32,000 nt of DNA from Wallemia ichthyophaga EXF-994 (lineage: Eukaryota > Fungi > Basidiomycota): assembly GCF_000400465.1 (NCBI RefSeq), contig NW_008806277.1, positions 1 through 32,000 on the forward strand, read 5' to 3'. Position numbers and translations under genes: made by a program. Below the pieces are notes generated by a model. It had not been told where the DNA came from, made no database searches, and saw only the letters and a list, made by a program, of their open reading frames with translations. Shown here one piece after another: positions 6,046-32,000 of this stretch (position 1 is its first letter; every line of letters starts with the position of its first letter).

Positions 6046-6542
6046 AATCTGTATTTAAAATAAAATTTCAAATTTTTGGTATAAATACCGCGATGGCGCC
6101 TTCACCTTCCTTCAACCAAATCAGCGTGATAAATTGTTGGGATGGAAGCTGTACCTCCGGGCAGTGGCTGATGCCTTCTCTTAACCCAGACACACGCTAA
6201 TAGTGATAAACCGTGCAATTAAAACAACCGCTTCGAGGATTCATTCCCAAGACGAGGGGTCACCTGCTTGACACGTACATAATATTTTTATTGTAATACT
6301 TTTATTGATATTTATTATATGCGACCTGTTTACTGCCTACTATTGTTTGTTGCATTTCAATAGGACTTGTCCCAGTTGAGCGATGTGGGGATGAACAGCT
6401 TTCAAAAGGTTGCTTTGTATATCAAGTACACCCTTGAATATCTCTTTAGATTACCTGGCCTGCGACTCCACACTCCCCTCACTCCGGTACTCGCGCATCT
6501 CTTTAACCGAGCCCGACCTTCAAGCCCCACCGCCATCATCAA

Positions 6543-11670: not shown

Positions 11671-11896
11671 TATTTATTAATTTAAGCAAATTTTCGAGAT
11701 TTAACTTTAGCGTGTATTCGGCAAAATCATTTCTTGAACGTGAATGCAAATCTTTTCAACAAAGTGGGTAAAAAGCAGAAACAATGGAAACAAAGGAATC
11801 TAATTAGAAACTTAGAAGCTCACAAAGGCGCAGAATACAAAACTTTCAATTCTTTATAGATTCAGCCGCAGAGAAGCCACCTTAAAATAAGAAACA

Positions 11897-13600
11897 ATGG
11901 TCGCGTTTAATCTATACAGGTCTATCAGATCACGTCCTACATCACCAGATTCTAGGTCTAAATCACAGCCACTCACTCGCGGTGGCTCTGAGCCATCAAA
12001 GAATCGATTCAAGCAATCCACTCCTTCTCCTTCTCCCTCCACTTCTTCTTTTGAACCCTCAGCTGGTTCTGGTGAATCCACTTACATCGCTATGGTCTCA
12101 TCACGCTTGCTTGATGGCGTTAACAAGGTTTTCATGTCCTCAAGCACGTCCCTCTCTGGTCCCGCTGACGGAGTTTCTTACAAAAATAGAAGATCACCAA
12201 AGAAGGCTAATGTTTATTCATTAGCCAATCAGATCGTACAGGAATTAGAAGTGGCTAAAACGGACGTATACCTCCTCAGAGCTGTTGCTAGACAGGTTCA
12301 TCGCTACCTCAGCGTTTTCTCTTCTCAGCTTGATCCTCTTCTAGCTATGGTATGCGCTGATCCCTCTTTTATTAGCGTATGTAACCCAAATCACTCTCCA
12401 ACTCAATCTCAATCTGATACTCTCAACAACCCATCCACTCGGAGAACTCCCTCACCACCCCCTCCAACTCCTCTCCCAATCCCATCTTCACAGCAGCAAA
12501 TCAACAATGCTCAGCATTTCGCTTTCGAATTAGCTCACACGGCGTGGATTATTAAGAATACCATATTGGATGCTTTTGAGGAGGGTAAAATCCCACAGCT
12601 CGCTAAGGATCTCATTAAAGATAGTTTAGAGAAGCTTGATGGGCACGTCGTTAGAGTTGTCAACCCTACAATTAAAGCTCTGCGTAGCTATCTTGGTTTG
12701 CTTGCCTCGGGATTGCGTGAGTCATACCCAGATGCAAACACCATCACTCGCAAGAATGGAAATATTGAGTTCAATCCCCTTCCATACCACCTCAAAGCTC
12801 TTTCCAAAGGAATGGATGCATCAAAGAAAATACTAGTAAAGATGACTGGTCCGTGCCAACCTGAGTCTGAGGCTTGGGTAGCGAGAATTACCGTCCACCT
12901 TATCTGGTCTGCTATGTTAGCTTTTAGCGTGAAGAAGCCAGCGACTCCACAATTGAATGGAAAACAAGTAAGGAAAGCTACAACGGCACCATCAACGGAT
13001 TCGACAGCAACAACCAAAACCAGAAACGCCTCACCCACACCTATCCACTCAGCACTAGGTAGAGTAGCTGCTGTATCAAAACCACGCACACCAAGTCCAG
13101 ATGCTGTCAGTATTGCTGAGAGTGGTGATCAGGGCAATTGCGTGATAGTAGCCGAGATGGAGGCATTCGTTAAGATGATTGATAAGTTTACAGATGGTCT
13201 GGTTCAAGTTAGCGATGTGGAGCCTGAAGATGAGCTTGAACCTGAATCAGTTGCACTGGCGAGATCTGCGTTGAAGGAGAGCATTGAAAGTCTCAAGACT
13301 ATGAAAGAATTCACAGCTACGCTGAGCACACCACCAGACAAAACGGATGTGCCTGTAGAGTTACCGAAAGTATTAGCGCTTCACTTGCTCATCGCGAGAA
13401 AGACAGGCACGCCAAACACACCAGACAAGATATGGAAGTGGAGCTGGGATGCGTATGCTGAAGGTATTGGTGGCTTCGGCGGGGCTATCAGATGGCAATC
13501 TGCAGTGTTTAAAGTGGTTGAAGCTGCACTCAAACACGAGGAGAAGAGAGAGGAAGATAAGGAATGGAATAAATTAATTTTGGACTTAATTCGTGATTGA
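11897..13600 (+). CDS. Hypothetical 567-aa protein; Ser/Pro/Thr-rich disordered segments alternate with helical blocks
   Basis: A single long ORF with ACAATG start context that fills the gap between PTC7 and CLP1. No family recognised. Confidence 0.75.
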   Translation: MVAFNLYRSIRSRPTSPDSRSKSQPLTRGGSEPSKNRFKQSTPSPSPSTSSFEPSAGSGESTYIAMVSSRLLDGVNKVFMSSSTSLSGPADGVSYKNRRSPKKANVYSLANQIVQELEVAKTDVYLLRAVARQVHRYLSVFSSQLDPLLAMVCADPSFISVCNPNHSPTQSQSDTLNNPSTRRTPSPPPPTPLPIPSSQQQINNAQHFAFELAHTAWIIKNTILDAFEEGKIPQLAKDLIKDSLEKLDGHVVRVVNPTIKALRSYLGLLASGLRESYPDANTITRKNGNIEFNPLPYHLKALSKGMDASKKILVKMTGPCQPESEAWVARITVHLIWSAMLAFSVKKPATPQLNGKQVRKATTAPSTDSTATTKTRNASPTPIHSALGRVAAVSKPRTPSPDAVSIAESGDQGNCVIVAEMEAFVKMIDKFTDGLVQVSDVEPEDELEPESVALARSALKESIESLKTMKEFTATLSTPPDKTDVPVELPKVLALHLLIARKTGTPNTPDKIWKWSWDAYAEGIGGFGGAIRWQSAVFKVVEAALKHEEKREEDKEWNKLILDLIRD

Positions 13601-13663
13601 CTATACATTGATATTAATATTATATTTGATTTATTTAGCTTCTTGATTTCATACGGCCATCTC

Positions 13664-15422
13664 ATGACGCAAAGAGTAGTGTCGATCCCGCCTCTGAATG
13701 AATTTAGACTAGAGCTAGACGTAAACGAGGAGCTGAGTATAAGACTGGTTGAGGGCAGAGCAGAGCTTAACGGCTGTGAGCTTAGTCTTGAGAAATCGTT
13801 GGCACTCAAGGACGAATTAAAGTGCTCGATCTACACGTGGACTGGCTGTAAGCTTGAAATTACCGGTCAGAGTCTCGTCGAGTACACGTCCAATGAGACT
13901 CCGCTTATCACGTACTTGAATCTACACTTGGCTTTCGAGCAGCAGCGTATTAAGGCTAGAAATACCCAAAGTGATTTCAAGCCCTCCCCAGAAAAACCCA
14001 ATGAGCGACTACCTGGATATGTAAACGCTGTAGATGCTTCCAGTTCGGGATATCGAGTTATGGTCATTGGACAGGAAGACAGTGGCAAGTCGACATTATC
14101 CAAGACGCTACTCAAGTGTGTCAGCTGTATTATTTAGTGTAATTTCTCTCACAACATACGCAGCTACGCTGCAAGAACAGGCAAAGGTTGGACACCGATC
14201 TTTGTGAATCTCGATCCATCTGATGTGAGTGGGGCGGGGTTATGAGGTTAAGTTTTCTAACACTTTAATCACTCCCAGGGTGGTCCACTTCCTCCTGGAA
14301 CTCTATCTGCCACTGCATACTCAACATCCACTCAAACAACATCACCTGTGAATGCATTTGGTTCTTGTTCCACTTCTGGTGCAGCCCTAGACAACTCTGC
14401 TGCCCTTATACCACAGGCTTTGCCATATGCACACGCATCTCCCGCCCGAAATCCAAAAGTATACAAGATTTTACTTGAGGCTCTTGCCCGGAGGCTGGAT
14501 ATGCGTTTGGAGAGAGACGCCAAAGGTGTGTTTAGGTGTTGATTTTATAAAATTTCTCACAATTGCAATTAGCTCGATCGTCTGGTGTTTTTATCGACAC
14601 TCCAGCTGCTTTCACCTCTGCGAATATCGGCTCAGACGATAAAAACAGCAAGTACGACTTGATCAAGCATGCTCTACATGCTTTCAGAGGTGCGTTTGAG
14701 CTATTTTAATTGCTCCATTCTAACAAGAGATTCAAGTGGATGTTTTACTTGTTATTGGTCATGAAAAACTTTATATTGAGATGCAAAGACTGTTAAAGTC
14801 GCTGGATGCGAACATTGCACAGAATATCAAGATACTTAAAGTACCAAAATCTGGTGGCGTGAGTAGAAGTATTTACGCGAGTCTGAATAACTAAAGTAAA
14901 CTAAACAAACAACTTAAGGCTGTCGAAACAGACGACGCGTACAGGTCGCGCATACAAGCAGCTCAAATCAAGTCATTCTTCTACGGGAACATGTCAAATA
15001 TTTCAGATGAGCAATTGTCACCTCAATCAATGACAATAAAGATAGATAATCTTAAAGTATTCAAAATCACAGAGGATAAAGTTGCACCTTCTTCTGCTCT
15101 ACCGATTGGTGCAAGTAGAGTTTTGGAGAATACGCAACTTGAGAGGGTAAACTTTGAAAGTTCTTCGCAGTTGCTTACGCTTGTTCATTCACTACTCTAT
15201 CTCGTAAAATGGCCAGATAGTAATAATGTATTGAATAAGCATGCCAAGGAATTTGAAGGTGATATTGATAGTAAGGACCTCATACGTGCAGACTTGGTTG
15301 GATTTTTAATTGTCACTGCTATCGATAGCGCAAAGCGTACGATCACGGTACTTGCACCATCTCCTGGAAGATTGCCCTCACTAAATGCAGTTTTTGGTTC
15401 ATTCGAATGGCAAGACACTTAA
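13664..15422 (+). CDS. CLP1: mRNA cleavage/polyadenylation factor CLP1. Introns at about 14116-14163, 14225-14278, 14526-14572, 14690-14736, 14859-14918
   Basis: N-terminal EFRLE..EGRAE..GCEL..IYTWTGCKLE, P-loop GQEDSGKSTL, NLDPS, SGVFIDTP, VIGHEKLY, KSGG, and C-terminal GFLIVTAID..KRTITVLAPSPGRLP. Confidence 0.93.
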
Positions 15423-15462
15423 TTTGATTTGATATGATAATTTATTCCTGGTATAATATAAA

Positions 15463-16946
15463 CTAAAATCTAACTTGATATGATCCTTGTGATTTTGTGA
15501 GGTAGCGCACCCATTTTACGGACTGGATTGTATGTTAAAATGGGTTAAGAGATGAAATGCCCACCTCACCTGATAGTTTGATTTCTCAAATACTTTCAAA
15601 AACCTGACGAGCAAACCTGAAGATGTGAACATTAAAACTTGGAAATCAACGTTGATGGGGGAGCGAGACCAGGTTTGTCTTGTTGTTGTAGAAGTGAGAT
15701 CAGCATCAGCAGTTAGCGTAGCCTCCGATTGACCCTGCATGCGAGGGATTTTCCAAACAATGTGATTCTCATCAGGTACATACTTAGCCTTACCCATTGG
15801 GGCATTGCATTTTACTTGAGTGGTGTTAAGTGGAGTTGGTATACGAAGATTGACAGTATTTGCACTCAGTTTGGAGTCAAAATTTGCTTTTATGCGGATA
15901 GTGTATTCAACTGTAGATCTACCAATTTCGTTTACGATGGGAGTAATTTTGAAAGGAAGATTGACGTTTTTAGTTGAACGATACCTCATCAGTTCGAATT
16001 CACCGTCTGGCGGGATGAACGAGATGATTCTGTCTTGTTCAAACCTCGATAACCTAACGCACTGATGAAATTGACAATCATCTAATTCAACAGCACCACC
16101 GAGAGCGCTATCGTCGACTATACGCGTCTTGTCACTTCTTTCTAAGACCAGTTTATCATTGAGACCAAATTTGCATTCAGGCATGCCAGATAGGTAAGCC
16201 CTCATGAGAATTTGGCCATCAACGTCAGCTCTCAGTTGAGTACCTTGAGCGCTCATCAAGTAATTAACGTTCTCGATAACGTCAACAAAAGCCTCATTCT
16301 TTCTATATCTAACGTCAGATCTACGCCATGAAGTAGCACCTGTTGCTTGTGAGGTAATCTTTGAGGAGTCTTGAGTAATAGCATGATCAGATTTAACGCC
16401 TTGGGTGGTGATGTACATTTTTAGAGCGTCAATTTCGGAGTTTTGCGGGTAGCCGAAATCAACAATTTCATCAAGTAACTCGTAAATCAAGACAAAGTTG
16501 TTCTTTACCGAGTCTTCAGTGAGTTGACCTAGGTAGCTTGTACAAACTTTGATAAACTTGAAAATGAATTCGAAAACGAGTGCAGCTAGGGCGTTACATC
16601 TGGGGGTGATGTGAGATAGGTGAAAGGAAACTGACGAAAAGAATTCACTTTGTAACAGCCATTACGTATAAGTTGTTATGTCTAACGTGGAAGAATGAAG
16701 TAGAACCGAGTGTGATTATAGGGGAGCGTACATCTGGGTTACTAACGACTTGAACTCTAAATATATCGCTAATAGAACGTCTTTTGAAGGGTTGGCTATT
16801 AAATCGCATGAAGTTTCTATCAACTCACTTTATATCAGATCTGAACAGCCTTGAAGATAGAACTTCACCCTTGGAATTCATAATATAGACACCCTTGAAG
16901 TTTATAAGCCTTTTTAAAATTAATGGTAAATACACACAGAGATCAT
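15463..16946 (-). CDS. APM4: AP-2 adaptor complex medium (mu) subunit; 9-nt first coding exon ATGATCTCT (16946-16938)
   Basis: Spliced N-terminus MISGVYIMNSKGEVLSSRLFRSDIK; YELLDEIVDFGYPQNSE; WRRSDVRYRKNEAFVDVIE; FHQCVRL; DGEFELMRY; AP-2-type C-terminus SVKWVRYLTKSQGSYQVRF* after a final intron. Confidence 0.95.
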
Positions 16947-16973
16947 GATTGGTTGGTTTGAACAAGTACAACG

Positions 16974-18122
16974 ATGAATGAGTTCAAAGAGGTTAACGAG
17001 GTCAAAGAAGTTAACGACTTCAATGAGTTTAACTCGGGTGATTTACAACATTCAGATGAAGATTTCGATAATGAATTCGATAATGATACACTGCCCAGTA
17101 TACCTGGAAAGAAAGGCAGAAAGCTAGGTGCAAAATACTCATTAATCCCACAAGGATCACAGAATATAGATATAAATATGAATAAACGTAAAAGACAAGC
17201 ACCTTTACCTTTTAATAGCTCAGTTAATAACGCTATTGCTTCTTCTTCAAAAGTTACTTCACGTACACGTCCACCTAAAGCTGATCCATATCGTCCACAG
17301 ATCCCTGCACCTGATTTTGCTAAACCTGATTATAGCCACGTTGAGGAGTTATTTGAACCTTTTATAAAGAAACAACTTGAACTCCAAGATCAAGGTCAGA
17401 CACCTCCACCAGTTAAATTCCCCGTTAATCAACGCCCTGATTACGTTGTTTCTTCTGCACCGCGTATACCACAGAATTACATAGTACCAGTTCCATTAGA
17501 CACTCACTCAAAATCAAATTACAAAACACGCAGGTGGTCGGAACATACGAAGCATATTAGAAGTTTGAGTGGTAGTACACTCCGTTTGAAATCTTGGCTG
17601 GGCTCGCAGCACAGTGAATACAGCAATAGACCTCCGCCACTTATCCCTACAACTACAACCAACAGCAATCAGGGGTTCGAAGAATCTATCAATCCAGCAA
17701 ATATCATTACTCCTTCAGGCGTCCCTCTTAATAAGCTCGATAAGCGTACGAGAGAGTATAAAATGATTATGGCTCAACATAAATCTCAATTGGAGCAAAA
17801 GAGAATGGATCAACAGCGCCAGAAGATTGATGATAACCATCAAAGTGGTGTTGGTGGTCTTGCTAACAGCGGCGGTGTTGACAGTGGTGCCAATAGCGTT
17901 GATAATACTGTTGATAACATCGTTGATAGCGTTATTGAAAAAAAGGAAGACGATGATACTGTGGATATCGCAGATAATTCAGAAACCGTCGATAATGCAG
18001 ACAACCTGGAGACTGCCAATAACGTATATAACCCAGAGAAAACTGAAATATCAGGTAATCCAAGCAACCCAGACAACACAGAGAACGCATCAAGAATGTC
18101 TATAAACAACATTTTAATGTAA
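16974..18122 (+). CDS. Largely disordered nuclear protein, possibly INO80 subunit Ies4-like
   Basis: 382-aa ORF. The block PLDTHSKSNYKTRRWSEHTKHIRSLSGSTLRLKSWLG resembles the Ies4-type LD...RRW...I.S..G...SW.G motif (from recall). N-terminal NE(F/V)KE repeats and C-terminal VDN/ADN repeats. Confidence 0.6.
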   Translation: MNEFKEVNEVKEVNDFNEFNSGDLQHSDEDFDNEFDNDTLPSIPGKKGRKLGAKYSLIPQGSQNIDINMNKRKRQAPLPFNSSVNNAIASSSKVTSRTRPPKADPYRPQIPAPDFAKPDYSHVEELFEPFIKKQLELQDQGQTPPPVKFPVNQRPDYVVSSAPRIPQNYIVPVPLDTHSKSNYKTRRWSEHTKHIRSLSGSTLRLKSWLGSQHSEYSNRPPPLIPTTTTNSNQGFEESINPANIITPSGVPLNKLDKRTREYKMIMAQHKSQLEQKRMDQQRQKIDDNHQSGVGGLANSGGVDSGANSVDNTVDNIVDSVIEKKEDDDTVDIADNSETVDNADNLETANNVYNPEKTEISGNPSNPDNTENASRMSINNILM

Positions 18123-18184
18123 AGCCGTATTAATTAATTTCATATGTTTATCTTCTTCCTTCTTTCCACACTCTCATTCTCATC

Positions 18185-20984
18185 ATGAGTCCGTATTCTC
18201 CATGACACCATCCACCACTCTCACTCCCACTCCTCTCAGTTTTCTATCTCGATGATCTTCCCGTTTGTTTCCCGTACGATCGTATATATCCAGGTCAGGC
18301 TGTAAACGCCTACTCGACACCCAATACTCACAACAACCACAGAGCAGTACAGCTACATGCGCGATCTCAAAAAGACACTCGACGCTGGTGGCCACTGCGT
18401 ACTAGAAATGCCTTCTGGGACCGGAAAGACTGTGTCGCTGCTATCACTTATCGTCGCCTATCAGCAGCATTACGACGCAGACAGAAAGCTGGTATACTGC
18501 TCGCGCACAGTACCAGAAATTGAAAAAGCTCTTGCAGAATTGAAGAGATTGATGGCTTACAGAGCTGATCAAGGTTACGCCGCTAAAGATAGTGGCTATA
18601 CCGGCTTAGGACTTAGTTCACGTAAAAATCTCTGCCTTCATCCTTCAATTAGCCAGGAGAGACGCGGTAAAGCTGTTGATGCTAGGTGCAGAGATCTCAC
18701 TTCTGCTCATGCTGTACAGAGAGGCAGAGACGATCCATCGAGTCACGAGCTCTGTAGCTATCATGAGAACTTGTCAGAGCTAGCACCAGGTGAGATCATC
18801 CCTCCTGGAATCTGGACAATTGAGGATGTTCGCAAGTTTGGTCAACAGAAAGGTCTTTGTCCATATTTCAGCGTTAGACGAATGGTTAGTGGTTTAAACT
18901 CCTCTTTAACCTCTCTTGATCCTCATTATCTCTTAAAAGGTCCAATTTTGCAACACTATAATCTACTCTTTCCACTATCTCCTAGATCCTAAAGTTGCCG
19001 AGATGGTATCTAGAGAAATGTCGAAGGACGCTATCGTCGTGTTTGACGAAGCACACAACATAGGTGAGTGAAACATAGCCTTACAAAAACACTAATTAAA
19101 TACACCAGATAACGTCTGCATTGAGTCACTCAGTATAGATCTAACCCGTCCAATGCTCGAAAGTGCTTCGAGGAGTGTCGATAGACTATCAGATAAAATC
19201 TCAGAAGCTAAACAGAACGACGCTCAGAGGCTACAAGATGAATATGCCAAATTGGTTGAAGGGATGCAAGATTCCGACGCACCTCCACCAAATGATGAAA
19301 TGGCCATGATAAGGCGGCAGGAAGAGGATGTATTAAGTAATCCAGGTGTGTAAAACAAGCACTCTAGTACCATCTAACATTTCACACAGTACTACCCGAC
19401 GACCTTCTCAAAGAGGCTATACCTGGAAATATTCGCAAGGCAGAGCATTTCATTGCCTTCTTGAAAAGATTTGTCGAATATTTAAAGACTCGCATGCGTG
19501 TTCTGCACGTCGTCGCAGAGACCCCACTGTCCTTCTTACAGCACCTTCGGGATATCACCTTTATCGAGAGGAAGCCATTGAGGTGGGTTATAGCAAAAAA
19601 CACTGCTCAAACAGTCTTAGCTAACACGCTAATTCCAGGTTTTGCTCAGACAGACTCTCAAACCTTATTAAAACTTTAGAGCTCGAGAGGCTGGACGAGT
19701 ATTCGTCTTTGCAGTCTGTTGCTGCATTTGCAACACTTGTTTCAACATATGAAAAGGGTTTGTCTGCGCCAGGTGAAAAAGCAGTCTAACAAATTCAAAG
19801 GCTTCCTGCTCATACTTGAGCCATTTGAAACAGAAACTGCAACAATACCAAATCCAATATTTCACCTCACTTGTCAAGACGCTAGTATAGCAATAGCCCC
19901 AGTCTTTGACAGGTTCTCATCAGTAATCATCACATCTGGTACCATATCACCATTAGATATGTATCCAAAGATGCTCAATTTCAACGCGATAGTGCAAGAA
20001 TCGTATCCAATGACACTATCTAGGAACTGTTTCATTCCAATGGTTATAACAAGAGGCAGTGACCAAGTAGCAGTCAGTTCACGATTTGAGGTAAGGAACG
20101 ACCCAGCCGTCGTCCGCAATTATGGACAGATGTTGATAGAATACTCGAAAGTTATTCCTGACGGTATAGTAGCCTTCTTTCCTAGTTATTTGTACATGGA
20201 GAGTATAGTAAGTGCGTGGAATGAGATGCAAATACTCGATGAAGTGTGGAAGCACAAGCTTATTTTCGTTGAAACACCCGACGCACCCGAGACAAGCATA
20301 GCATTAGAGAACTTCCGTAAAGCTTGCGATAATGGACGTGGAGCAGTTATGTTATCGGTGGCACGAGGGAAAGTGAGTGAAGGAATAGATTTTGATCATC
20401 ATTTTGGTCGGGCTGTTATAATGTTTGGAGTTCCATACCAATACACAGAATCTCGTATACTCAAAGCTCGTTTAGAATACCTACGTGATAATCACAGAAT
20501 ACGTGAATCAGATTTCTTAACTTTCGACGCAATGAGACACGCTGCGCAGTGTGTAGGTAGAGTTTTGAGAGGTAAATCTGATTACGGTTTGATGATCTTT
20601 GCCGATAAGCGATTCGCGAGATCAGATAAAAGAGCAAAGTTACCACGTTGGATTAATCAATACATCGCTGAAACATCATCGAATCTTTCAACCGATATGG
20701 CTATATCTCTCGCAAAGAGGTTTGTCAGGACTATGGCTCAACCATTTGATCATTCTCAAACTGGGGTCAGTTTGTGGACAATGGATCATGTTTTAGAGAG
20801 ACAGAGGTTGGATAAGGAGAGTGATCTCGCAGCTGTAGCACTCACTGATAAAGATCATATGAACGTCGATGGAGTTGTTGACGGAGTTGCAGATGGAGTT
20901 GGCGATTCTAGCGGTGATAGTGATATCGATGATACTGGTGGGATTGATGATAACGCATTGATAGATATCCCTATGACGCAGTAA
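18185..20984 (+). CDS. RAD3: TFIIH DNA helicase XPD/Rad3 (Fe-S helicase), multi-exon; first exon is the 4 nt ATGA (18185-18188)
   Basis: Spliced start [30 protein letters not shown], Walker [10 protein letters not shown], Fe-S region RKNLCLHP...CRDLT...CSY...[34 protein letters not shown] and [14 protein letters not shown]. Confidence 0.97.
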
Positions 20985-21337: not shown

Positions 21338-21768
21338 ATGGTCAGATTAATTACGCATAATATTTTGACATGTGCAGTGAAGGGTTGCGTCGATAGTGGG
21401 AAGAACTATCCACTAACATTTAAAAATGTCCAAGGAATTGAAATCAGAGAGCAGGAATTCAACGCTGACTTCATCAGAGCTTTCTTCCCTAAACTTGATT
21501 ATGGTGTATTGAAATCGACGTTGGAATCTGTAAGTAGATATTTAGTCCATTTTGATAATCTCACACAACCAAGCTCGGTGACGATTCACTCAAACTTGAT
21601 AGCGTGGAGGATATTGACGGACAACCAGAAGATTTCTTGAGACTGCTGCATAAGGTTCTTCTGGAGATGGATGTTACCCAGGGAGAGATGACGTGCGGTA
21701 ACTGCCAGCATAAATACCAAATCAATGAAGGTATTCCAAATATGCTACTTGGAGCAGATGAGATATAG
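21338..21768 (+). CDS. TRM112: Multifunctional methyltransferase activator Trm112. Exons 21338-21529 and 21574-21768
   Basis: MVRLITHNILTCAVKGC..NYPL, EFNADFI, a 44-nt intron (GTAAGT..AAG), then LHKVLLE..V..GEMTCGNCQHKYQINEGIPNMLL. Confidence 0.95.
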
Positions 21769-27073: not shown

Positions 27074-27874
27074 TTATAAGTGCAGAATGACGACTCTGTT
27101 GATTCTGTCGTTAAATGGGTCTTCTATAAGCTCCACATTGGCTACACCACTCTGCTTGGCCAGCTTTACCACCAATTGAGCCTGATTATAACCAACTTCC
27201 ATCCAAACTTGTTTGTTAAACGCATCCTTGAGTAAATAGATCATTCTCTTATAAAACACCAGTCCGTATTCATCTCCCCCAGCGAGTAGTGCATCTTTAT
27301 CCTCCCAATCCCGGACTTCTGAGTGCAGTGTCTTGTAATCGCGTTGAGTAATGTAAGGTGGATTGATAGTAATAACATTGTAGCTGCTGAGGTCTATAGA
27401 TTCACTGAGAATGTCCATCTGCTTCACCTCGAACCTCTCGAGCTGCTCCTTGGTGAGATTGTTACGTGCGTTGATTGTAGCTAGCTTGCACGCCTTGGGT
27501 GAGCTGTCCACTACCACGACGCTATCGCAGTGCAGCTCCTTAGCAATACTCACACCAATGCACCCACTCCCTGTACACAGATCTAGCACTCTAAGCTGTC
27601 TATTATCACAAAATCGCGCGATTAGTTTGTCTACCCAGAATTCTGTCTCCTGGCGTGGAATAAGCGTTGGTGGAATACACTGAATCACTGCACTATTGAA
27701 TGGCTGGTTGCCTATAACGAATTGCAGCGGTTTCCCCGATAGTCGCTGTCCCAGTTTGAATACAGCCTCTTTGCCACTCCTACAGCTCTGTCTAACCCAT
27801 CTAATCTCATTGTACGCGTCTGCGCTGCCAAAGCTATCCACCATTCTCCGCGTTACAGTTAGCCGCCTTCTCAT
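27074..27874 (-). CDS. MTQ1: HemK/PrmC release-factor glutamine N5-methyltransferase, probably mitochondrial
   Basis: PLQFVIGNQPF, LIPRQETE, SAM-binding VLDLCTGSGCIG, NPPY, and an Arg-rich N-terminus MRRRLTVTRR. Confidence 0.9.
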   Translation of the reverse strand: MRRRLTVTRRMVDSFGSADAYNEIRWVRQSCRSGKEAVFKLGQRLSGKPLQFVIGNQPFNSAVIQCIPPTLIPRQETEFWVDKLIARFCDNRQLRVLDLCTGSGCIGVSIAKELHCDSVVVVDSSPKACKLATINARNNLTKEQLERFEVKQMDILSESIDLSSYNVITINPPYITQRDYKTLHSEVRDWEDKDALLAGGDEYGLVFYKRMIYLLKDAFNKQVWMEVGYNQAQLVVKLAKQSGVANVELIEDPFNDRINRVVILHL

Positions 27875-27929: not shown

Positions 27930-29108
27930 ATGAGAATCACGCCTTCCCAGCTCAAGAACGCCTCCCCCACCGCCGTCGTTATGATGAACATGGGTGGTCC
28001 CGCCACACTCGACAACGTTCACTCATTCCTCTCAAACCTCTTCCACGATAAGGATCTAATCCCGCTGCCATTCCAATCAATTCTCGCCCCTAGAATCGCC
28101 AATAGACGTACACCCAAGATAAAGCAGCAGTACAAAGAAATCGGCGGCGGCTCACCCATCCTCCATTGGACACAGCGTCAGGGCGATGAAATGGTGAAGC
28201 TGCTGGACGAGCTCTCTCCTGCTACAGCCCCGCATAAGCCCTACATCGCATTCAGATATGTCGATCCTCTCACAAAAGACACGCTCGCGCAAATGAAACA
28301 CGATGGCGTCACTCGCGCTGTAGCGTTCACGCAATACCCCCAATACTCGTGCAGCACCACTGGGAGCAGTTTGAATGAGCTCTATCGCCAGATTCATGCG
28401 CTGGGCATAGACAAGGATATAAACTGGTCCATTATTGACAGATGGCCCAACCACCCACTCCTAGTTGAAGCTTTTGCGGAGAATGTCGCCAAGTCTTTGC
28501 GTAAGTATGCTCCTGAAGAACGTGGCAAAATCCCCATTCTCTTCTCTGCTCACTCGCTTCCGATGAGTGTGGTGAACAGGGGAGATCCGTATCCAGCAGA
28601 GGTAGCGTCTACGGTGCAAGCGGTAGTTAGTCGACTGCCTGGCCTCACTGGCCATACCAACCCACACCGACTCACCTGGCAGTCCCAAGTCGGGCCATCC
28701 GCCTGGCTCGGCCAGCAGACCTCCGATGCTATACAAGGTCTGCGCCGTCTCGGCTACACAAAGGCCCTCGTCGTCCCTATTGCTTTTACATCTGACCATA
28801 TTGAGACGCTGTACGAACTAGATCTCGAGTGCGTCGAGGAGGCTCGCGAGATCGGTCTCCAACTCGACCGCGTGGACAGCCTGAATGATAGCCCTGCTTT
28901 CGTGCGCGCTATCGCCGACCTCGCCGCTGAGCATCTGGGTAGTGTCTATCAGAATAAAGTGACAGACATCAGCCATACTGGTTACGTCGGCGGTTGGGTC
29001 CCGGGTCACCCTACCTCCACTCAATTCGCTCTCAGGTGTCCAGGATGCACCAATGATGTCTGCCTCAAACAGAAAAATTTCTTCAATCGCGGTAGTAGTG
29101 TTATATAG
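27930..29108 (+). CDS. HEM15: Ferrochelatase (protoheme ferro-lyase), intronless
   Basis: MMNMGGP, YKEIGGGSP, AFRYVDP, QYPQYSCSTTGSS, LFSAHSLP, WQSQVGP, FTSDHIETLYELD and C-terminal RCPGCTNDVC. ATG in ACCAACACC-ATG context. Confidence 0.96.
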   Translation: MRITPSQLKNASPTAVVMMNMGGPATLDNVHSFLSNLFHDKDLIPLPFQSILAPRIANRRTPKIKQQYKEIGGGSPILHWTQRQGDEMVKLLDELSPATAPHKPYIAFRYVDPLTKDTLAQMKHDGVTRAVAFTQYPQYSCSTTGSSLNELYRQIHALGIDKDINWSIIDRWPNHPLLVEAFAENVAKSLRKYAPEERGKIPILFSAHSLPMSVVNRGDPYPAEVASTVQAVVSRLPGLTGHTNPHRLTWQSQVGPSAWLGQQTSDAIQGLRRLGYTKALVVPIAFTSDHIETLYELDLECVEEAREIGLQLDRVDSLNDSPAFVRAIADLAAEHLGSVYQNKVTDISHTGYVGGWVPGHPTSTQFALRCPGCTNDVCLKQKNFFNRGSSVI

Positions 29109-29219: not shown

Positions 29220-29640
29220 TACAAATATTGATAATCTTCGCCTATCCATACTTCTTGTACATTGATAGCTAACGATTTTAGTGACTCAAAGGGATGCGGT
29301 TCTTGGCATGTGTGCCGTAAGTTGGGAGGTAACTACGTGGAGCTACCGAAGGCGCGCGGGTGGGTGTTGAGCTGGTTTTTGAAGAACTCGTAAAGGGTTT
29401 GTAGAGAGTGTGAGTTTCTGAGTAATGAACCTAATCCGAACTGAATATTTATCTTGGTAATTTTTCTTCATAATGTGATTTTGGCCATTATATGTCTTTT
29501 ATATATGAAAATTCTATGTGAGATGGTGTCCTCTGTGCCACAAGCATTGCATTGAGGTGAAGCAATCAATATGAAAACGTACAATGACTTGATTTTATGA
29601 ATATTTGCGTACACCTTTTGCGTTTCAATTGTATATATTT
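29220..29640 (-). mobile_element. Possible degenerate 3' remnant of a non-LTR (LINE-like) retroelement; boundaries approximate
   Basis: A minus-strand frame at about 29560-29516 reads SPQCNACGTEDTISHRIF, resembling the C-terminal C-x2-C-x7-H zinc knuckle of LINE ORF2 with the last Cys lost. Downstream frames are interrupted by stops. No RT core seen. Confidence 0.35.
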
Positions 29641-29670
29641 TTAAGCTGCAAAGGAATTCTCAGTTCAAAA

Positions 29671-29685
29671 TAACTCAACGGGAGT
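29671..29685 (+). promoter_or_regulatory. A-box-like element / D-arm relic in the leader of the permuted tRNA
   Basis: TAACTCAACGG (29671-29681) compared with the tRNA's own A box TGGCTCAATGG. ACTC-AACGG-GAGT forms a 4-bp hairpin. It lies 37 nt upstream of G53 of the B box. Confidence 0.6.
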
Positions 29686-29692
29686 AGCTGAT

Positions 29693-29768
29693 ATCGAAAG
29701 GTTGCAGGTTCGAGCCCTGCGTCGGTCACCACGGCCGGCTGGCTCAATGGTAGAGTATTCGACTACGG
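29693..29768 (+). tRNA. tRNA-Arg(ACG): Circularly permuted tRNA-Arg, anticodon ACG (29765-29767). 3' half 29693-29728, linker CCAC 29729-29732, 5' half 29733-29768; junction at canonical position 37/38
   Basis: Acceptor GGCCGGC/GTCGGTC (5 Watson-Crick + 2 G-U) with A73. D arm GCTC-AATGGTA-GAGT. Anticodon stem TTCGA/TCGAA (5 WC) with loop CT-ACG-G|A. Variable region AGGTT. T arm GCAGG-TTCGAGC-CCTGC. T8, A14, G18G19 and A15:T48 are all in place. Confidence 0.9.
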
Positions 29769-29779
29769 CATTGAAATAA

Positions 29780-29786
29780 TTTTTTT
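29780..29786 (+). terminator. RNA polymerase III oligo(dT) terminator
   Basis: A run of 7 T begins 11 nt after G37 of the 5' half. Confidence 0.75.
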
Positions 29787-29819
29787 CTTATTCACTTTAT
29801 AAGTGCGGCAGAATAACGA

Positions 29820-30646
29820 CCGTTATCATCAATTGCGTTTCACTCAAGCCAAATTTTTAGCCCTATCACTGACACTCACGTTTCAACATAAAAAGTGATA
29901 CGAACATAAAACTTTCTTCTCAAATGATTTAAGGTTTTGAAGTACTTGTATTATTTGCACGACTCTCGTTGGTTGTTTTCTAGATTTACATTATTAAGTG
30001 AATCCGGTTAAATGGCATCTGCATTGTTTTCTGAGCCACTACTATCTAAGCATTTTCGTTATTCCAATATTTCATAGCGTTTGAAATGGTTGAGATTGAG
30101 ACACTGTCTCTCAATCGAATACCCGTAGATTGTCTTTGGCAGCGTGAGGAAGAATTTAAAATGACCTGAAGCATTGGCAGAGTTTTAATTCTATTTCTTT
30201 AGGCCTTTTTTACACTCTTCACGTCAGCTCGTCACCCTCGAATTAAACCCCTCTTCGGAAAGGTTTCTGGGTTTCAGCTAGTAAGATTAACAGAATACTT
30301 GGAAGCAAAGTGACTACAAGAATTGTTTACTAAGGGATTTTCCAATGTGTGCTATGTGGGCGTCTATTAACCGAGCGTAGCTCAACGATACAGCCTCAAT
30401 CTTGCAGCAACATAGATTATCTCAGCAGGGAGCCTTGCGAAGGACTTCTTGTTGGATGTTTTGTCGTCTGTGGATTGCTTTGTCTTGGTGGTTGAGGTTA
30501 GATAGAGAGATGAAGTGAGGGATGGAGAGCAAACCTACCAGGAGTATCGCTCAAAGTGGACTTTGAACGGACTGCCAGATCTTAGTTGGAGTTCAGAAAG
30601 AGTTAAATGAGCGGAGATAAAGCTTACTGGGAGTAGCAAAGACCAT
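29820..30646 (-). pseudogene. Fragmented multi-exon coding-like region with an F-box-like motif; pseudogene or unresolved gene model, boundaries approximate
   Basis: ATG at 30646 followed by clear splice signals (GTAAGC..TAAG; GTAGGT..CTAAC). One frame reads KKSFARLPAEIIYVAARL (30441-30415). I could not build a stop-free model. Confidence 0.3.
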
Positions 30647-31060
30647 TTACAGGGAAAGGGCTAAACCCGCCATACTATGGTCCACAAGACGGCGAGCCGC
30701 GAGGAAATAAGTGTGGGCCACTACAGAACGCAGCGGTGTTAGAGTCGTTAATGTACTTTGACTCACGTGACTCTTGCCTTGTCTGTTGTGTTTCACTAAC
30801 CCGTTACCCTCGTTCCTAGTCTCGCGGCTAACAGCGTTGAAAGAGGGGTGATGAGCAAAACAAAGTACCATCTCAAAGCATACATATGAGAAAATTAGAA
30901 ATCACGATATCAACGCCTATCGCATGTCTGCTGATGACTGTGAAAAAAGCGTGAAAATCAAATGCATCATACAAGTTGGATAAAGCTGGATATCATTAGG
31001 ACGTCGTGCGTGTGAGTAGGTGGATATAATAAGAGGGGAAACACTGAGTTAAGCTGGCAT

Positions 31061-32000
31061 CTAGCGAGTTAGTTCTGGCGAGTTCTGCCAAGCAGAGTTT
31101 TGCAAAGTGAGCAGTTTATGAGTTTCGAGGCATTCCGCAATGAGACCTGGATAATTATGTTCCATCTCCTCTCTTACCGAATAAGCCCTGTAAAGAATCT
31201 CCGCAGTCTGTTTATCCTGCAGGAGGACTCTCAAGGAACCTCGAACGAACGGAAAAAGTTTACAACATTTCTGCAAGTCGTTATTCAGCGCGTTGAATTT
31301 TAAAGCGACAATATCGATATGAAACCCATTTAAAGCGCGCATCTCATCCTTTTGCGTCCGTTTTGTGATATAGTATTTCAGCAGAGCACGTTTCTTACAT
31401 GTCCTGTTTACAGAGTCTGTAAACTTACCAAATGTACGTAATGTATGTGTGTATCAAATTTAGTGGTGTATCGGTGGTGATTGAGCCATTTACCAGTTCG
31501 TAATTCTTGAAAATTATCATGTTCGGTTTACGCATGTAGCAGCTGTCCAGCGCGTTGAGAATTGCAATGAAGTGCTCCTGCGTTATCAAATCGAATCCAG
31601 GCATATCGACCAATGATGGTCGATGGATGCGGAGTAATTTGATACGGAAGTATTTGTCGCATATCGCAATGGCTAGCATCGCGGCTTTGAGATGTGTCAT
31701 GTGGTCTATGTTTATCGTTAGCTCTGTCGCACCGTCTGACCTACCAATCAGGAGATGTGTATTTTCAGTCTCGATGAGCGCGTCGAGTGTGAGAGTGAAC
31801 TTTTGCAGTACAGGCATTTTGTTGATGCATGTGGATAGCTGTGGACATGCTAATAACCGTGTGGATTTATTGAAGTGTTCCAGATTCAACTCAAGTACTT
31901 CTATCGAGTAGAGGAAATCTGTTGGTTGGAGTACACAGTTTTGAAGGAATGTCAGGTAAGATATCAGCTCAGCTGGTTTCGTGTTGTTTGTTGGTTTCAG
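31061..32000 (-). CDS. Partial CDS of unknown function, 5' end outside the window; frames 32000-31429 and about 31403-31061
   Basis: The frame is open from the window edge (LKPTNNTKPAELISYLTFLQNCVLQPTDFLYSIEVLELNLEHF...) to a GTAAGT donor at 31428. A second frame continues TCKKRALLKYY...MRALNGF...ELTR*. Confidence 0.5.

Follow-up and report, generated by a model that had tools for sequence, protein, structure and literature searches.

A probably functional, circularly permuted nuclear tRNA-Arg(ACG) gene in Wallemia fungi

We analysed a 32,000-nucleotide stretch of the nuclear genome of Wallemia ichthyophaga EXF-994 (hereafter the window) together with related loci from other Wallemia genomes and from metagenomes, and conclude that the common ancestor of the sampled Wallemia species very probably carried a functional circularly permuted tRNA-Arg(ACG) gene of type II (i.e., broken at 37/38), which occupies at least two loci in at least one living species. 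On a single strand, tRNA nt 38-73 come first, followed by a CCAC linker and then by nt 1-37, and four further copies are arranged likewise, with a linker of either 4 or 1 nt. The two halves are nearly invariant among copies while their surroundings are not, the four substitutions in W. hederae are compensated across the stems, and the unit is flanked by features resembling those of ordinary RNA polymerase III (Pol III) genes.

Architecture and detection of the permuted element

The element occupies positions 29693-29768 of the window. Its parts were read from the sequence, and the halves were additionally defined by running ARAGORN on the rejoined molecule:

29693..29728, + strand: 3' half, tRNA-Arg(ACG) nt 38-73, ATCGAAAGGTTGCAGGTTCGAGCCCTGCGTCGGTCA, comprising the anticodon-stem 3' strand, variable loop, T-arm, acceptor 3' strand, and discriminator A73
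29707-29717, + strand: B box GGTTCGAGCCC, inside the T-arm of the 3' half
29729..29732, + strand: intervening sequence (linker) CCAC, 4 nt, which closes the acceptor stem into a hairpin
29733..29768, + strand: 5' half, tRNA-Arg(ACG) nt 1-37, GGCCGGCTGGCTCAATGGTAGAGTATTCGACTACGG, comprising the acceptor 5' strand, D-arm, anticodon-stem 5' strand, and C32-U33-A34-C35-G36-G37
29740-29750, + strand: A box TGGCTCAATGG, inside the D-arm of the 5' half
29765-29767, + strand: anticodon ACG, in the 5' half

The sequence, the coordinates, the two 36-nt halves, and the break at 37/38 are exactly as given in a preliminary description of this DNA, which had proposed a permuted gene with an intact cloverleaf and a full set of invariant nucleotides in a fungal nuclear genome. 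Joined as 5' half plus 3' half, the 72-nt product is indeed called tRNA-Arg(acg) by ARAGORN, and its stems pair throughout (acceptor, 5 Watson-Crick and 2 GU; D, 3 Watson-Crick and 1 GU; anticodon, 5 Watson-Crick; T, 5 Watson-Crick). The rejoined tRNA also possesses U8, A14, G18G19, U33, R37, G53, T54-T55-C56, and A58, as well as a 7-nt anticodon loop. The free minimum-free-energy (MFE) fold of the 72-mer is not a cloverleaf; non-cloverleaf MFE folds are common among unmodified tRNA sequences. The fungal setting is likewise borne out, as the source organism, W. ichthyophaga, is a basidiomycete; it is a salt-loving fungus. As a separate observation, the CCAC linker of this species opens with CCA and encodes CCA plus one nucleotide.

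It had further been anticipated that standard tRNA scanners would overlook such a gene, and they do: in genomic order, ARAGORN reported no tRNA in the whole window and no Rfam family reached its gathering score, with RF00005 absent even at E <= 10. When run in intron mode, ARAGORN made only spurious calls at the locus that reuse the 3' half, namely a "tRNA-Thr" and a "tRNA-Lys" with giant introns. A structure-based scanner was applied, which looks for a T-arm, a closed 7-bp acceptor hairpin, and a D-arm, and which would miss junctions located inside the D- or T-arm. Across 389 kb of Wallemia-type DNA, both strands included, this scanner matched the present element and its orthologs only, while 20 shuffled sets gave 0 matches; the permuted arrangement is thus far beyond chance, and no permuted tRNA gene other than the Arg(ACG) family was found in that DNA. 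A metagenome pattern scan gave one match (L011), which was rejected because a normal tRNA-Asn lies there with the beginning of a second tRNA behind it.

Conservation across Wallemia

The preliminary description had suggested searching related genomes and looking there for compensatory changes between the halves. Syntenic permuted genes were found in three species, W. ichthyophaga, W. hederae, and W. mellicola, in each case between the ferrochelatase gene and L7Ae/hydrophobin genes, 585-806 nt downstream of ferrochelatase and on the same strand. A second locus (B) is represented by W. hederae (L025) and by a Wallemia-like metagenome contig (L012), which share the same gene order there, with neighbour genes that differ from those at the ferrochelatase site. 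In W. ichthyophaga and W. mellicola, locus B was not reached via the hydrophobin paralogs P0166, P0167, P0168, P0169, and P0170, which lie at other loci that are without the gene. An environmental contig with a related ferrochelatase (L013) lacks the element in the 1.4 kb downstream of that gene, and the contig L014, with a tricalbin 82% identical to that of L012, ends before the expected element position.

Across copies, the halves are 94-100% identical, whereas the flanks resemble each other at the level of shuffled (random) sequence. Identity of the halves is complete among W. ichthyophaga, W. mellicola, and L012, as against only 75% for the ferrochelatase protein next door, and the W. hederae 3' half matches that of W. 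ichthyophaga at 34 of 36 positions, with both changes compensated. BLAST alignments end no more than 3 nt beyond the element on either side, and conservation stops exactly at the 37/38 break, right after G37. W. ichthyophaga and the two W. hederae copies have CCAC as their linker, W. mellicola and L012 a single A, so the linker is without sequence constraint, as expected for a spacer that is removed. Within species the pattern recurs: six W. mellicola strains have 0 variable columns in the 73-nt element versus 61 in 1,200 flanking nt, and the W. hederae copies A and B are identical at 75 of 76 core positions versus 58-74% in their flanks.

The four substitutions in W. hederae form two double-sided compensatory pairs, 3:70 (C-G to A-U) and 28:42 (U-A to C-G), the latter in the anticodon stem that joins the two halves, and the simulated probability of such a pattern for four random substitutions is 3.9e-5. 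The copies comprise only three distinct core sequences, and the covariation comes from W. hederae alone, whose two copies share the changes. Together with the near-identity of the halves against random-level flanks, these pairs uphold the earlier suggestion that pairing between the halves is under selection; relative to the flanks, purifying selection acts on both sequence and base pairing, as expected of a functional tRNA gene.

Flanking features, proposed maturation, and competing explanations

Outside the halves, the following features were delimited in the window:

29632..29653, + strand: AT-rich element TATATATTTTTAAGCTGCAAAG, a candidate TFIIIB/TATA-like promoter, containing TTTAAGCT, which starts at -53 from the first coding base and recurs upstream of a conventional tRNA-Leu gene
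29660..29692, + strand: predicted 5' leader, equivalent to the 3' part of a tRNA intron, with a predicted start
29674-29681, + strand: CTCAACGG, an A-box/D-loop-like (ARYGG) motif in the leader
29688..29690, + strand: CTG at -5 to -3 of the leader, proposed as the proximal pair of an anticodon-leader helix
29769..29779, + strand: predicted 3' trailer CATTGAAATAA, taking the place of a tRNA intron's 5' part; trailers of the other lineages pair with the leader
29780..29786, + strand: T7 run at +12 to +18, resembling a Pol III terminator
29543..32000 (unit 29543-34178), no strand assigned: exact tandem duplication of 4,636 bp in EXF-994, its second unit lying past the window end

The four lineages examined each have an AT-rich patch between about -45 and -62. 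In W. ichthyophaga, TTTAAGCT also precedes a conventional tRNA-Leu gene, at -31, and a related TACACA motif lies at -55 to -62 of four of the five permuted genes and at -32 of the conventional tRNA-Leu gene of W. mellicola. Sharing of a motif of the TACACA/TTTAAGCT type was matched by 0.3% of shuffled sets, in a comparison that involved two conventional genes. In the permuted genes the motif thus sits 22-30 nt farther upstream than in conventional tRNA-Leu, a shift of about one leader length. Downstream, the T7 run named in the preliminary description is present, and a T5-T7 run is found at +10 to +24 in all five permuted copies; conventional Wallemia tRNA genes carry T5-T6 runs shortly downstream. 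The permuted unit is flanked by a promoter-like element, whose function as a promoter is putative, and by a run that resembles a Pol III terminator.

Leader length was estimated from the displaced upstream motif and from leader-trailer helices, which start at -27 to -34 in the other lineages. Pairing between leader and trailer amounts to -23.2 kcal/mol in W. hederae A, -17.4 in W. hederae B, -14.0 in W. mellicola, and -13.7 in L012, and in each of these 4 of 5 copies it was matched by at most 2 of 500 shuffles, even though trailers bear no sequence relation to each other between lineages. The W. ichthyophaga duplex is weak (-3.0 kcal/mol) and not significant. The ARYGG motif, which was defined post hoc and is kept as no more than a lead, is found in all four leaders. 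A tandem-duplication relic or cryptic A box in the leader was considered and rejected, as local alignments of leader against 5' half and of trailer against 3' half were not significant (p = 0.065-0.97; the 3' half and the trailer of W. hederae gave a single nominal 0.03), and similarity of leader to 5' half reached significance in no lineage.

At the junction, G-3 (29690) is present in all five permuted copies, with pyrimidines at -4 and -5 throughout, and G-3 also occurs in the conventional 37-nt intron of W. hederae tRNA-Arg(UCU), the clearly parsed Wallemia tRNA intron. Neither free nor constrained folding produced a strict hBHBh' motif (3-nt bulge, 4-bp helix, 3-nt bulge), and in the constrained folds the 5' cleavage site lies at a helix end instead of in a 3-nt bulge. 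Those folds gave the same yeast-type geometry in four lineages, with the leader YYG (-5 to -3) paired to C35-G37. We propose that G-3 with C32, or YYG with C35-G36-G37, may position the 3' cleavage site. The eukaryotic tRNA splicing endonuclease (TSEN) cuts at 37/38 only, measures as a ruler from the mature body, and has a single conserved and critical anticodon-intron contact, the proximal pair (PMC10485636); the modelled junction is compatible with these rules.

We infer every step of the maturation that follows. Pol III would start ~25-35 nt upstream of the 3' half, directed by the upstream TATA-like/TACACA-type element that conventional Wallemia tRNA genes carry too, and would stop at the downstream T-run. 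A difficulty for this scheme is that the B box precedes the A box, so that initiation directed by TFIIIC in the canonical way would begin within the gene itself. The predicted transcript, consisting of leader, nt 38-73, linker, nt 1-37, and trailer, would fold into a normal tRNA body with its acceptor stem closed by a loop of 2-5 nt (A73 plus linker) and with the anticodon stem pairing the two ends of the coding part. By pairing with anticodon-loop nucleotides (G-3 being proximal) and, farther out, with the trailer, the leader would mimic an intron-containing pre-tRNA. The heterotetrameric endonuclease, measuring from the mature body, would then cut after G37 and before A38, which would remove trailer and leader, and a fungal tRNA ligase of the Trl1 type, with Tpt1, would join G37 to A38. 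The acceptor loop already holds the two halves together, which is why a circle of 73-76 nt would result. RNase P would open this circle 5' of G1, and 1-4 extra 3' nucleotides would be trimmed: in W. ichthyophaga and W. hederae only the final C, CCA being pre-encoded, and in W. mellicola the A, followed by CCA addition. The 1-nt linker of W. mellicola and L012 leaves a 2-nt acceptor loop as the putative RNase P substrate. With A34 deaminated to inosine, the tRNA would read CGU, CGC, and CGA. Maturation via a circular intermediate is documented for permuted tRNAs of algae (PMC3978253).

The same DNA could in principle encode a stable tRNA-like RNA that takes no part in decoding and is neither cleaved nor religated, in which a T-arm/closed acceptor/D-arm module sits on a long end stem and serves as a protein-binding or processing signal, as in the bacterial YrlA/Y RNA domain or mascRNA-type elements. 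We regard this as quite improbable. The sole Rfam signal at the locus is a sub-threshold local match to YrlA (RF02553; 28.6 bits, E = 6e-4) that covers exactly this module, and the leader-trailer helices resemble the ends of a Y-type RNA; the position downstream of ferrochelatase, on the same strand in three species, would also suit such an RNA. YrlA has the same module order (T-arm, closed acceptor-like stem, D-arm, paired ends), which is why it is the only Rfam model to respond. However, the score lies far below 69, the gathering score of the family, and the match is confined to model positions 23-88 of 114, i.e., the tRNA-like module alone, which falls short of YrlA/Y RNA membership. YrlA is bacterial, lacks an anticodon loop, and has a conserved Ro60-binding stem, whereas in Wallemia the leader and trailer, which would form the protein-binding stem, show no sequence conservation, the neighbour genes at locus B differ, and a complete anticodon loop is reconstituted on rejoining. 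Put together, the 6-nt and 1-nt segments at which conservation ends make a canonical 7-nt anticodon loop that has U33, a purine at position 37, and ACG, the usual Arg anticodon of eukaryotes, a coincidence for which a non-decoding RNA offers no reason, and the break falls at the single position that the eukaryotic splicing endonuclease cuts (PMC10485636).

A slightly slimmer chance is left to a non-functional relic, which would have arisen by decay of a tandem pair or by retro-copying of a mature tRNA that was nicked or circularised, and whose halves would stay tRNA-like only because conventional tRNA-Arg(ACG) genes at other sites of the genome repeatedly convert them. Fungal tRNA genes normally do not encode CCA, and a linker that opens with CCA in two species hints at an RNA-derived origin, but the linkers of W. 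mellicola and L012 have no CCA. In fission yeast, tRNA genes at scattered sites are known to convert one another, and the compensatory changes shared by W. hederae A and B show concerted evolution or recent duplication. BLAST and ARAGORN revealed no conventional tRNA-Arg(ACG) in the 31 fetched loci, ~1-2% of any genome, and donor genes are possible outside this sample. Conversion from conventional genes, however, cannot maintain features outside the halves, and the flanks have several of these: the T-run and G-3, which no copy of the five lacks, leader-trailer helices that unrelated sequences form anew, and the upstream motif with its consistently shifted distance. A dead 76-bp element is also unlikely to survive at syntenic sites in every sampled lineage when its flanks have mutated to saturation.

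An assembly artefact, such as the collapsed tandem array of intron-containing tRNA genes that the preliminary description had named as a possible refutation, has next to no chance of being correct, since, despite the exact tandem duplication in the EXF-994 reference, which includes the element and marks a repeat-prone region or some assembly uncertainty, the same arrangement recurs in three assemblies of W. ichthyophaga and six of W. mellicola, in two contigs of W. hederae, and independently in a JGI metagenome contig, with species-specific flanks and two linker lengths. The window is identical to L003 (0 mismatches), in which positions 11614-16249 are repeated exactly at 16250-20885; the second unit carries a second copy of the permuted gene, and strains L001 and L002 have a single unit.

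Known permuted systems and the decoding of arginine codons

The hosts listed in the preliminary description (Cyanidioschyzon merolae, prasinophytes, the Bigelowiella nucleomorph, and Thermofilum pendens) agree with reviews (PMC3978253, PMC13578239), and the literature searched contained no fungal or opisthokont permuted tRNA gene. Type II (37/38) permuted genes are known from the prasinophytes Ostreococcus and Micromonas, the Bigelowiella natans nucleomorph, and Auxenochlorella (Maruyama et al. 2010; PMC3978253; PMC12633428). As in Wallemia, these have the 3' half upstream of the 5' half on one strand, a break at 37/38, a short intervening sequence at the acceptor end, an AT-rich region upstream, and a T-stretch downstream, and they are missed by standard scanners. 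Wallemia differs in that the host is a basidiomycete, an opisthokont without plastid ancestry, in that its linker is only 1-4 nt long and encodes CCA in two species, and in that its junction resembles a yeast-type anticodon-intron helix and not a BHB; moreover, circular intermediates have been sequenced in algae, whereas the circle in Wallemia is predicted from DNA.

The gene logic and processing in C. merolae are the same as those proposed for Wallemia, with endonuclease and ligase producing a circle whose acceptor loop is opened by RNase P and 3' processing (PMC3978253), and its genes likewise have a TATA-like element upstream and a T-run downstream. In contrast to Wallemia, the 11 permuted genes of C. 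merolae are broken at various positions and have BHB motifs and linkers of 7-74 nt, and the alga has no recognisable TFIIIC subunits that bind the A and B boxes, while in the Wallemia DNA sampled only the Arg(ACG) family is permuted, only at 37/38, alongside ordinary tRNA genes. In the crenarchaeon T. pendens, which has permuted tRNA-Tyr(GTA) and tRNA-iMet, the tRNA-Tyr encodes CCA followed by a 1-nt intervening sequence (Chan et al. 2011; PMC3978253). This CCA+1 layout is that of W. ichthyophaga and W. hederae; the tRNA-Tyr differs from theirs in belonging to an archaeon, in a junction at 59/60 in the T-loop, in an additional intron, and in its BHB-dependent recognition by a homomeric-type endonuclease. 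CCA is commonly genome-encoded in archaea.

Closer to home, the conventional W. hederae tRNA-Arg(UCU), one of the ordinary tRNA genes that coexist with the permuted gene in Wallemia, shares with it cleavage at 37/38, G-3, the same D-arm sequence, and a downstream T-run, and the same endonuclease and ligase presumably act on both. Its halves are in normal order around an internal intron, so that ligation gives a linear tRNA, whereas in the permuted gene leader and trailer each hold a part of the "intron" and the ligated product has to be circular.

The preliminary description had pointed out that codons read by this tRNA are used in coding sequences of the window, and CGU, CGC, and CGA indeed make up 19 of 41 Arg codons in the two coding sequences adjacent to the element. 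Conventional Arg(ACG) genes that would make the permuted copy redundant may exist in Wallemia. We give slightly less than even weight to the further proposal that the permuted form is the sole form of tRNA-Arg(ACG) gene in the genus, which would then depend on a circular-RNA route, ordinary enzymes, and a shifted promoter. If this is so, Wallemia would need circular-RNA maturation to read CGU, CGC, and CGA, by a route run by the heterotetrameric TSEN, Trl1/Tpt1, and RNase P acting on a 2-5-nt acceptor loop, with transcription rescued by an upstream promoter element moved one leader-length away. If true, a permuted tRNA gene would for the first time be on record beyond algae, nucleomorphs, and archaea, and the eukaryotic ruler-type endonuclease would be shown to tolerate both an acceptor stem that is closed and an "intron" that is split.

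So far, permuted tRNA genes have passed for an oddity found in one archaeon and in a handful of algae whose tRNA processing or Pol III machinery is unusual, and opinion has divided between remnants from the early evolution of tRNA and inventions of the algae. A case in a culturable basidiomycete that is conserved and occupies several loci would extend them to opisthokonts and would argue for independent recent origins over ancient retention. Fungal tRNA sets compiled with tRNAscan-SE or ARAGORN can silently miss an essential isoacceptor. Fungal enzymology is well understood (Sen2/34/15/54, Trl1, Tpt1, RNase P, Rex1, and the CCA-adding enzyme), and a fungal system would let the mechanism be probed, including how a ruler endonuclease deals with a closed acceptor stem, how a 1-nt loop is opened, and how Pol III transcribes a gene with its B box first. 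The linker series (CCAC versus A) and the paralogs with rebuilt leader-trailer helices, in turn, provide material on the origin and upkeep of permuted genes.

Anatomy and genomic setting of the permuted gene

The element encodes a tRNA-Arg(ACG) whose 3' half (nt 38–73) lies upstream of its 5' half (nt 1–37), and the permuted layout, cloverleaf, 37/38 break, and downstream T7 run claimed in the preliminary description were borne out in every detail by the sequence, ARAGORN, and a structure-based scanner. The features discussed first are:

29693–29768, + strand: permuted tRNA-Arg(ACG), ATCGAAAGGTTGCAGGTTCGAGCCCTGCGTCGGTCA-CCAC-GGCCGGCTGGCTCAATGGTAGAGTATTCGACTACGG
29707–29717, + strand: B box, 5' of the A box
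29740–29750, + strand: A box, 3' of the B box
29780–29786, + strand: T7 run, 3' of the permuted gene
27930–29108, + strand: ferrochelatase gene, one border of the element's intergenic region
29543–32000, continuing to 34178 in scaffold coordinates (L003, the EXF-994 locus, 11614–20885): tandem duplication, exact 4,636-bp unit

Joining the second block to the first gives 72 nt that ARAGORN calls tRNA-Arg(acg), with an acceptor stem of five Watson-Crick and two GU pairs, a D-stem of three Watson-Crick pairs and one GU pair, anticodon and T stems of five Watson-Crick pairs each, a 7-nt anticodon loop (CUACGGA), and the universal nucleotides U8, A14, G18G19, U33, purine 37, G53, T54-T55-C56, and A58; the break is at 37/38. 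Run on the DNA in its genomic order, ARAGORN found zero tRNAs in the whole window, and Rfam returned no family at gathering score. The only real Rfam signal at a permissive E-value was a local, sub-threshold match (28.6 bits versus a gathering score of 69) to YrlA, a bacterial RNA whose tRNA-like module runs T-arm, closed acceptor stem, D-arm, the same order as in the permuted gene, and this match is independent structural confirmation of the layout. The scanner, which seeks a T-arm, a 7-bp closed acceptor hairpin, and a D-arm, matched only the window element and its relatives in 389 kb (both strands) and gave 0 matches on 20 shuffled sets.

Wallemia ichthyophaga, a halophilic basidiomycete, belongs to the class Wallemiomycetes, and the window matches the first 32 kb of scaffold KE007227.1 of strain EXF-994 (GCA_000400465.1) identically. 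The element occupies a 2.3-kb intergenic region between the ferrochelatase gene and an L7Ae-domain gene, with no protein gene call in the window overlapping it. A few kilobases apart on the minus strand are a Trm112 homolog (~21338–21768) and a HemK/MTS-type methyltransferase gene (~27074–27874), the latter divergent from ferrochelatase across a ~55-bp spacer; this arrangement is probably ordinary. The duplication starts 150 bp upstream of the permuted tRNA, includes the L7Ae-domain and hydrophobin genes, and places a second permuted copy just past the window end, while strains GCA_004918015.1 and GCA_004917845.1 carry a single unit with one copy. Two readings are possible: an assembly artefact, or a genuine and very recent duplication that would double the permuted tRNA's dosage.

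The genome paper annotated tRNAs with tRNAscan-SE 1.23 (PMC3849046). When introns were allowed, ARAGORN called a tRNA-Thr(ggt) with a 295-nt intron (11415–11802 of L001, another W. ichthyophaga strain) and a tRNA-Lys(ctt) with a 1,696-nt intron (L003 14650–16438), both rejected as merely reusing the permuted gene's T-arm and acceptor 3' strand; automated annotation could thus mislabel the locus rather than leave it blank.

Conservation and further copies in Wallemia

Ferrochelatase is 85% (W. hederae) and 75% (W. mellicola) identical in protein sequence to that of W. ichthyophaga, and gene order around it is kept in both species, with the element in the same position:

L004 11780–11855: permuted element, W. 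hederae ferrochelatase locus (copy A)
L005–L010 12050–12122: permuted element, six W. mellicola strains
L025 10870–10795 (SPNW01000017.1), − strand: second permuted tRNA-Arg(ACG) of W. hederae (copy B), adjoining a hydrophobin gene

Conservation in related genomes and compensatory changes between the halves, the two comparisons suggested by the preliminary description, were both found. Both 36-nt halves in W. mellicola are 100% identical to those of W. ichthyophaga, with a single-A linker versus CCAC. Between species, BLAST alignments stop ~3 nt past the element on either side and flanking similarity is at shuffled-control level, so that conservation runs exactly from A38 to G37. The four differing positions in W. 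hederae make up two base pairs, each changed on both sides with pairing kept: in the acceptor stem, C3-G70 has become A3-U70, and in the anticodon stem, U28-A42 has become C28-G42 (simulated P = 3.9e-5 for two such compensatory pairs from four random substitutions, in one lineage whose two copies are not independent). Because the 28:42 pair links the two ends of the permuted coding region, the halves are under selection to pair with each other. Within W. mellicola, the six strains show 0 variable columns in the 73-nt element (~3.7 expected at the flank rate) and 61 in 1,200 nt of flank. We regard this conservation, as comparative sequence evidence, as decisive for a permuted gene.

Further copies came from one pattern scan of 241 million metagenome records, with acceptor stem and linker left free, which yielded two matches only. 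The first (contig L011) was rejected, being an ordinary tRNA-Asn with the beginning of a second tRNA behind it. The second (contig L012) is a permuted Arg(ACG) whose halves are identical and whose linker is A, set in entirely different flanks; its neighbors are hydrophobin, mitochondrial carrier, Rab GTPase, tricalbin, and DAG kinase genes. The L012 tricalbin reaches only 82% and 70% identity with the closest relatives in the databases, indicating a separate Wallemia-like species. Since a hydrophobin gene was near the element in every case, hydrophobin paralog loci were sampled, and these included W. hederae copy B. This copy has the same two compensatory pairs and CCAC linker as copy A and differs once, in the D-loop (U16 to G), the cores being 75/76 identical and the flanks 58–74% identical over at least 200–300 nt on each side. 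Locus B has the gene order of L012 yet flanks like locus A, which suggests that gene conversion ran over a long tract or that a segment was duplicated more recently.

The Arg(ACG) gene family is permuted at every locus where it was found, and no conventional tRNA-Arg(ACG) occurs in the 31 fetched loci, which represent ~1–2% of any one genome. An environmental contig (L013, ENA k119_81346) with a ferrochelatase gene 72–73% identical to the Wallemia ones has no permuted element in the 1.4 kb downstream of that gene (1421–2834); this lineage may have no ferrochelatase-linked copy, or its element may be more distant.

Putative transcription signals and proposed maturation

By established Pol III biology, a B box preceding the A box poses a problem, as canonical TFIIIC geometry would start transcription inside the gene. 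The same point has been raised for algal permuted genes (PMC3978253). We compared 90 nt upstream of five permuted genes and two conventional tRNA-Leu genes. Four of the five permuted genes carry the hexamer TACACA between −55 and −62, and the W. mellicola tRNA-Leu has it at −32 (a hexamer is shared as widely in only 0.3% of shuffled sets), and TTTAAGCT is common to the W. ichthyophaga permuted gene (−53) and its conventional tRNA-Leu (−31). The upstream element thus sits 22–30 nt further upstream in permuted than in conventional genes, a shift matching the leader length needed to reach the leader-trailer helices (start −27 to −34). With two conventional genes compared, this is suggestive of upstream-element-directed initiation. 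Separately, permuted and conventional genes have in common a possible upstream Pol III element specific to the genus (TTTAAG-N-T-ACACA-AAG-like, with TACACA as its core). The upstream sites, followed by those of a leader motif, are:

Window 29632–29653: upstream element
L004, L005, L012, and L025, ~−55 to −62: upstream element
L028 (W. mellicola tRNA-Leu locus) ~170–190 and L030 (W. ichthyophaga tRNA-Leu locus) ~6350–6366: upstream element
Window 29674–29681: A-R-Y-G-G motif, CTCAACGG
L005 ~12032–12039: A-R-Y-G-G motif, CTAACGGT
L012 ~361–368: A-R-Y-G-G motif, TCAATGGT
L004 ~11765–11771: A-R-Y-G-G motif, CCAGCGG

The A-R-Y-G-G motif, A-box/D-loop-like and defined after seeing the data, occurs in every leader, 12–22 nt before the 3' half begins. 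One possibility is that it survives from an ancestral 5' half once encoded upstream, which would imply a tandem-duplication origin; another is that it functions as an A box, placed ahead of the B box in the canonical order. Full leader-to-5'-half alignments were not significant.

All five permuted copies have a T5–T7 run at +10 to +24 and, in the leader, G at −3 with pyrimidines at −4 and −5. A leader-trailer helix built from unrelated sequences is significant in four of the five (W. hederae A, −23.2; W. hederae B, −17.4; W. mellicola, −14.0; L012, −13.7 kcal/mol), with no more than 2 of 500 shuffles doing as well in each case; the sole exception is W. ichthyophaga (−3.0 kcal/mol, not significant). 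Folds of four lineages in which the tRNA body was constrained share one junction geometry: leader YYG is paired to C35-G36-G37, a short unpaired stretch contains the 3' cleavage site, and the 5' site is at the foot of the leader-trailer helix. This predicted geometry does not match the archaeal/algal hBHBh' motif but resembles the yeast/human "anticodon-intron helix" architecture, and eukaryotic tRNA introns are invariably at 37/38 according to a 2023 review of TSEN (PMC10485636). Together, these flank features point to a Pol III unit that would be processed like an intron-containing pre-tRNA.

Conventional Wallemia tRNA genes served as controls:

L025 18382–18490, − strand: W. hederae tRNA-Arg(UCU), 37-nt intron at 37/38, first 6 nt lost at the contig end
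L030 6382–6469: W. ichthyophaga class II tRNA-Leu(AAG), upstream of a hydrophobin cluster
L028 210–290: orthologous W. mellicola tRNA-Leu(AAG), likewise upstream of a hydrophobin cluster

The Arg(UCU) intron (gtatcttcc...actagcc, ending ...AGCC|A38) has G at −3 as in the permuted leaders, and this tRNA and the permuted Arg(ACG) have the same D-arm, TGGCTCAATGGTAGAGTAT. The W. ichthyophaga tRNA-Leu(AAG) has 8 extra nt in its anticodon loop, absent from the W. mellicola ortholog and probably a mini-intron (CGACAGCA) at 37/38; an ARAGORN tRNA-Ala(agc) with a non-canonical intron at L030 was rejected as a mis-parse of this gene.

We propose that the Pol III transcript would comprise leader, nt 38–73, linker, nt 1–37, and trailer, and that the tRNA body would fold with its acceptor stem closed by A73 plus the linker. 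TSEN would cleave after G37 and before A38, and a Trl1-type ligase would join G37 to A38, giving a 73–76-nt circle because the halves are already connected. RNase P would open the circle 5' of G1; at the 3' end, the one C that follows the pre-encoded CCA would be trimmed in W. ichthyophaga and W. hederae, and one A trimmed and CCA added in W. mellicola and L012. A34 would become inosine. A circular-intermediate route is documented for algal permuted tRNAs, and in Thermofilum pendens tRNA-Tyr the gene likewise supplies the CCA, with an intervening sequence of 1 nt behind it, as in CCAC, a loop so short that the review names no known way of opening it (PMC3978253).

Alternative readings and significance

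The window element is very probably a functional permuted tRNA-Arg(ACG) gene, judging from these sequence comparisons. A tRNA-like RNA that does not decode, of the YrlA or mascRNA kind, would account for part of the data, namely the module order and terminal helix, but leaves unexplained both why conservation ends exactly where 6 + 1 nt rebuild a canonical anticodon loop (U33, ACG, purine 37) and why the supposed binding stem has no sequence conservation. If the element were a dead relic that conventional genes kept tRNA-like by gene conversion, the maintenance of T-runs, G−3, rebuilt leader-trailer helices, and a positioned upstream motif would be left without an explanation. Assembly collapse, raised in the preliminary description, and assembly artefact in general are excluded by >10 independent assemblies from three named species plus a metagenome contig, with two linker lengths. 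The permuted arrangement itself may have arisen from either a tandem dimeric gene or a retro-copy of a CCA-ended tRNA.

Reviews list permuted tRNA genes only from red and green algae, a chlorarachniophyte nucleomorph, and T. pendens (PMC3978253, 2014; PMC13578239, 2026), and a 2025 preprint adds the green alga Auxenochlorella (PMC12633428). No fungal or other opisthokont example appeared among the matches listed since 2015 for "permuted tRNA", no literature combining that term with "basidiomycete" was found, and the Wallemia genome papers do not mention one; the earlier statement that none is known holds within these reviews and listed matches. CGU, CGC, and CGA account for 19 of the 41 Arg codons in the two neighboring CDSs, both intron-less, so the isoacceptor is in heavy demand. 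Within the literature searched, a permuted tRNA gene in a fungus represents a wholly unexpected lineage, and its extreme features, a 1–4-nt linker and an encoded CCA, were previously known only from an archaeon.
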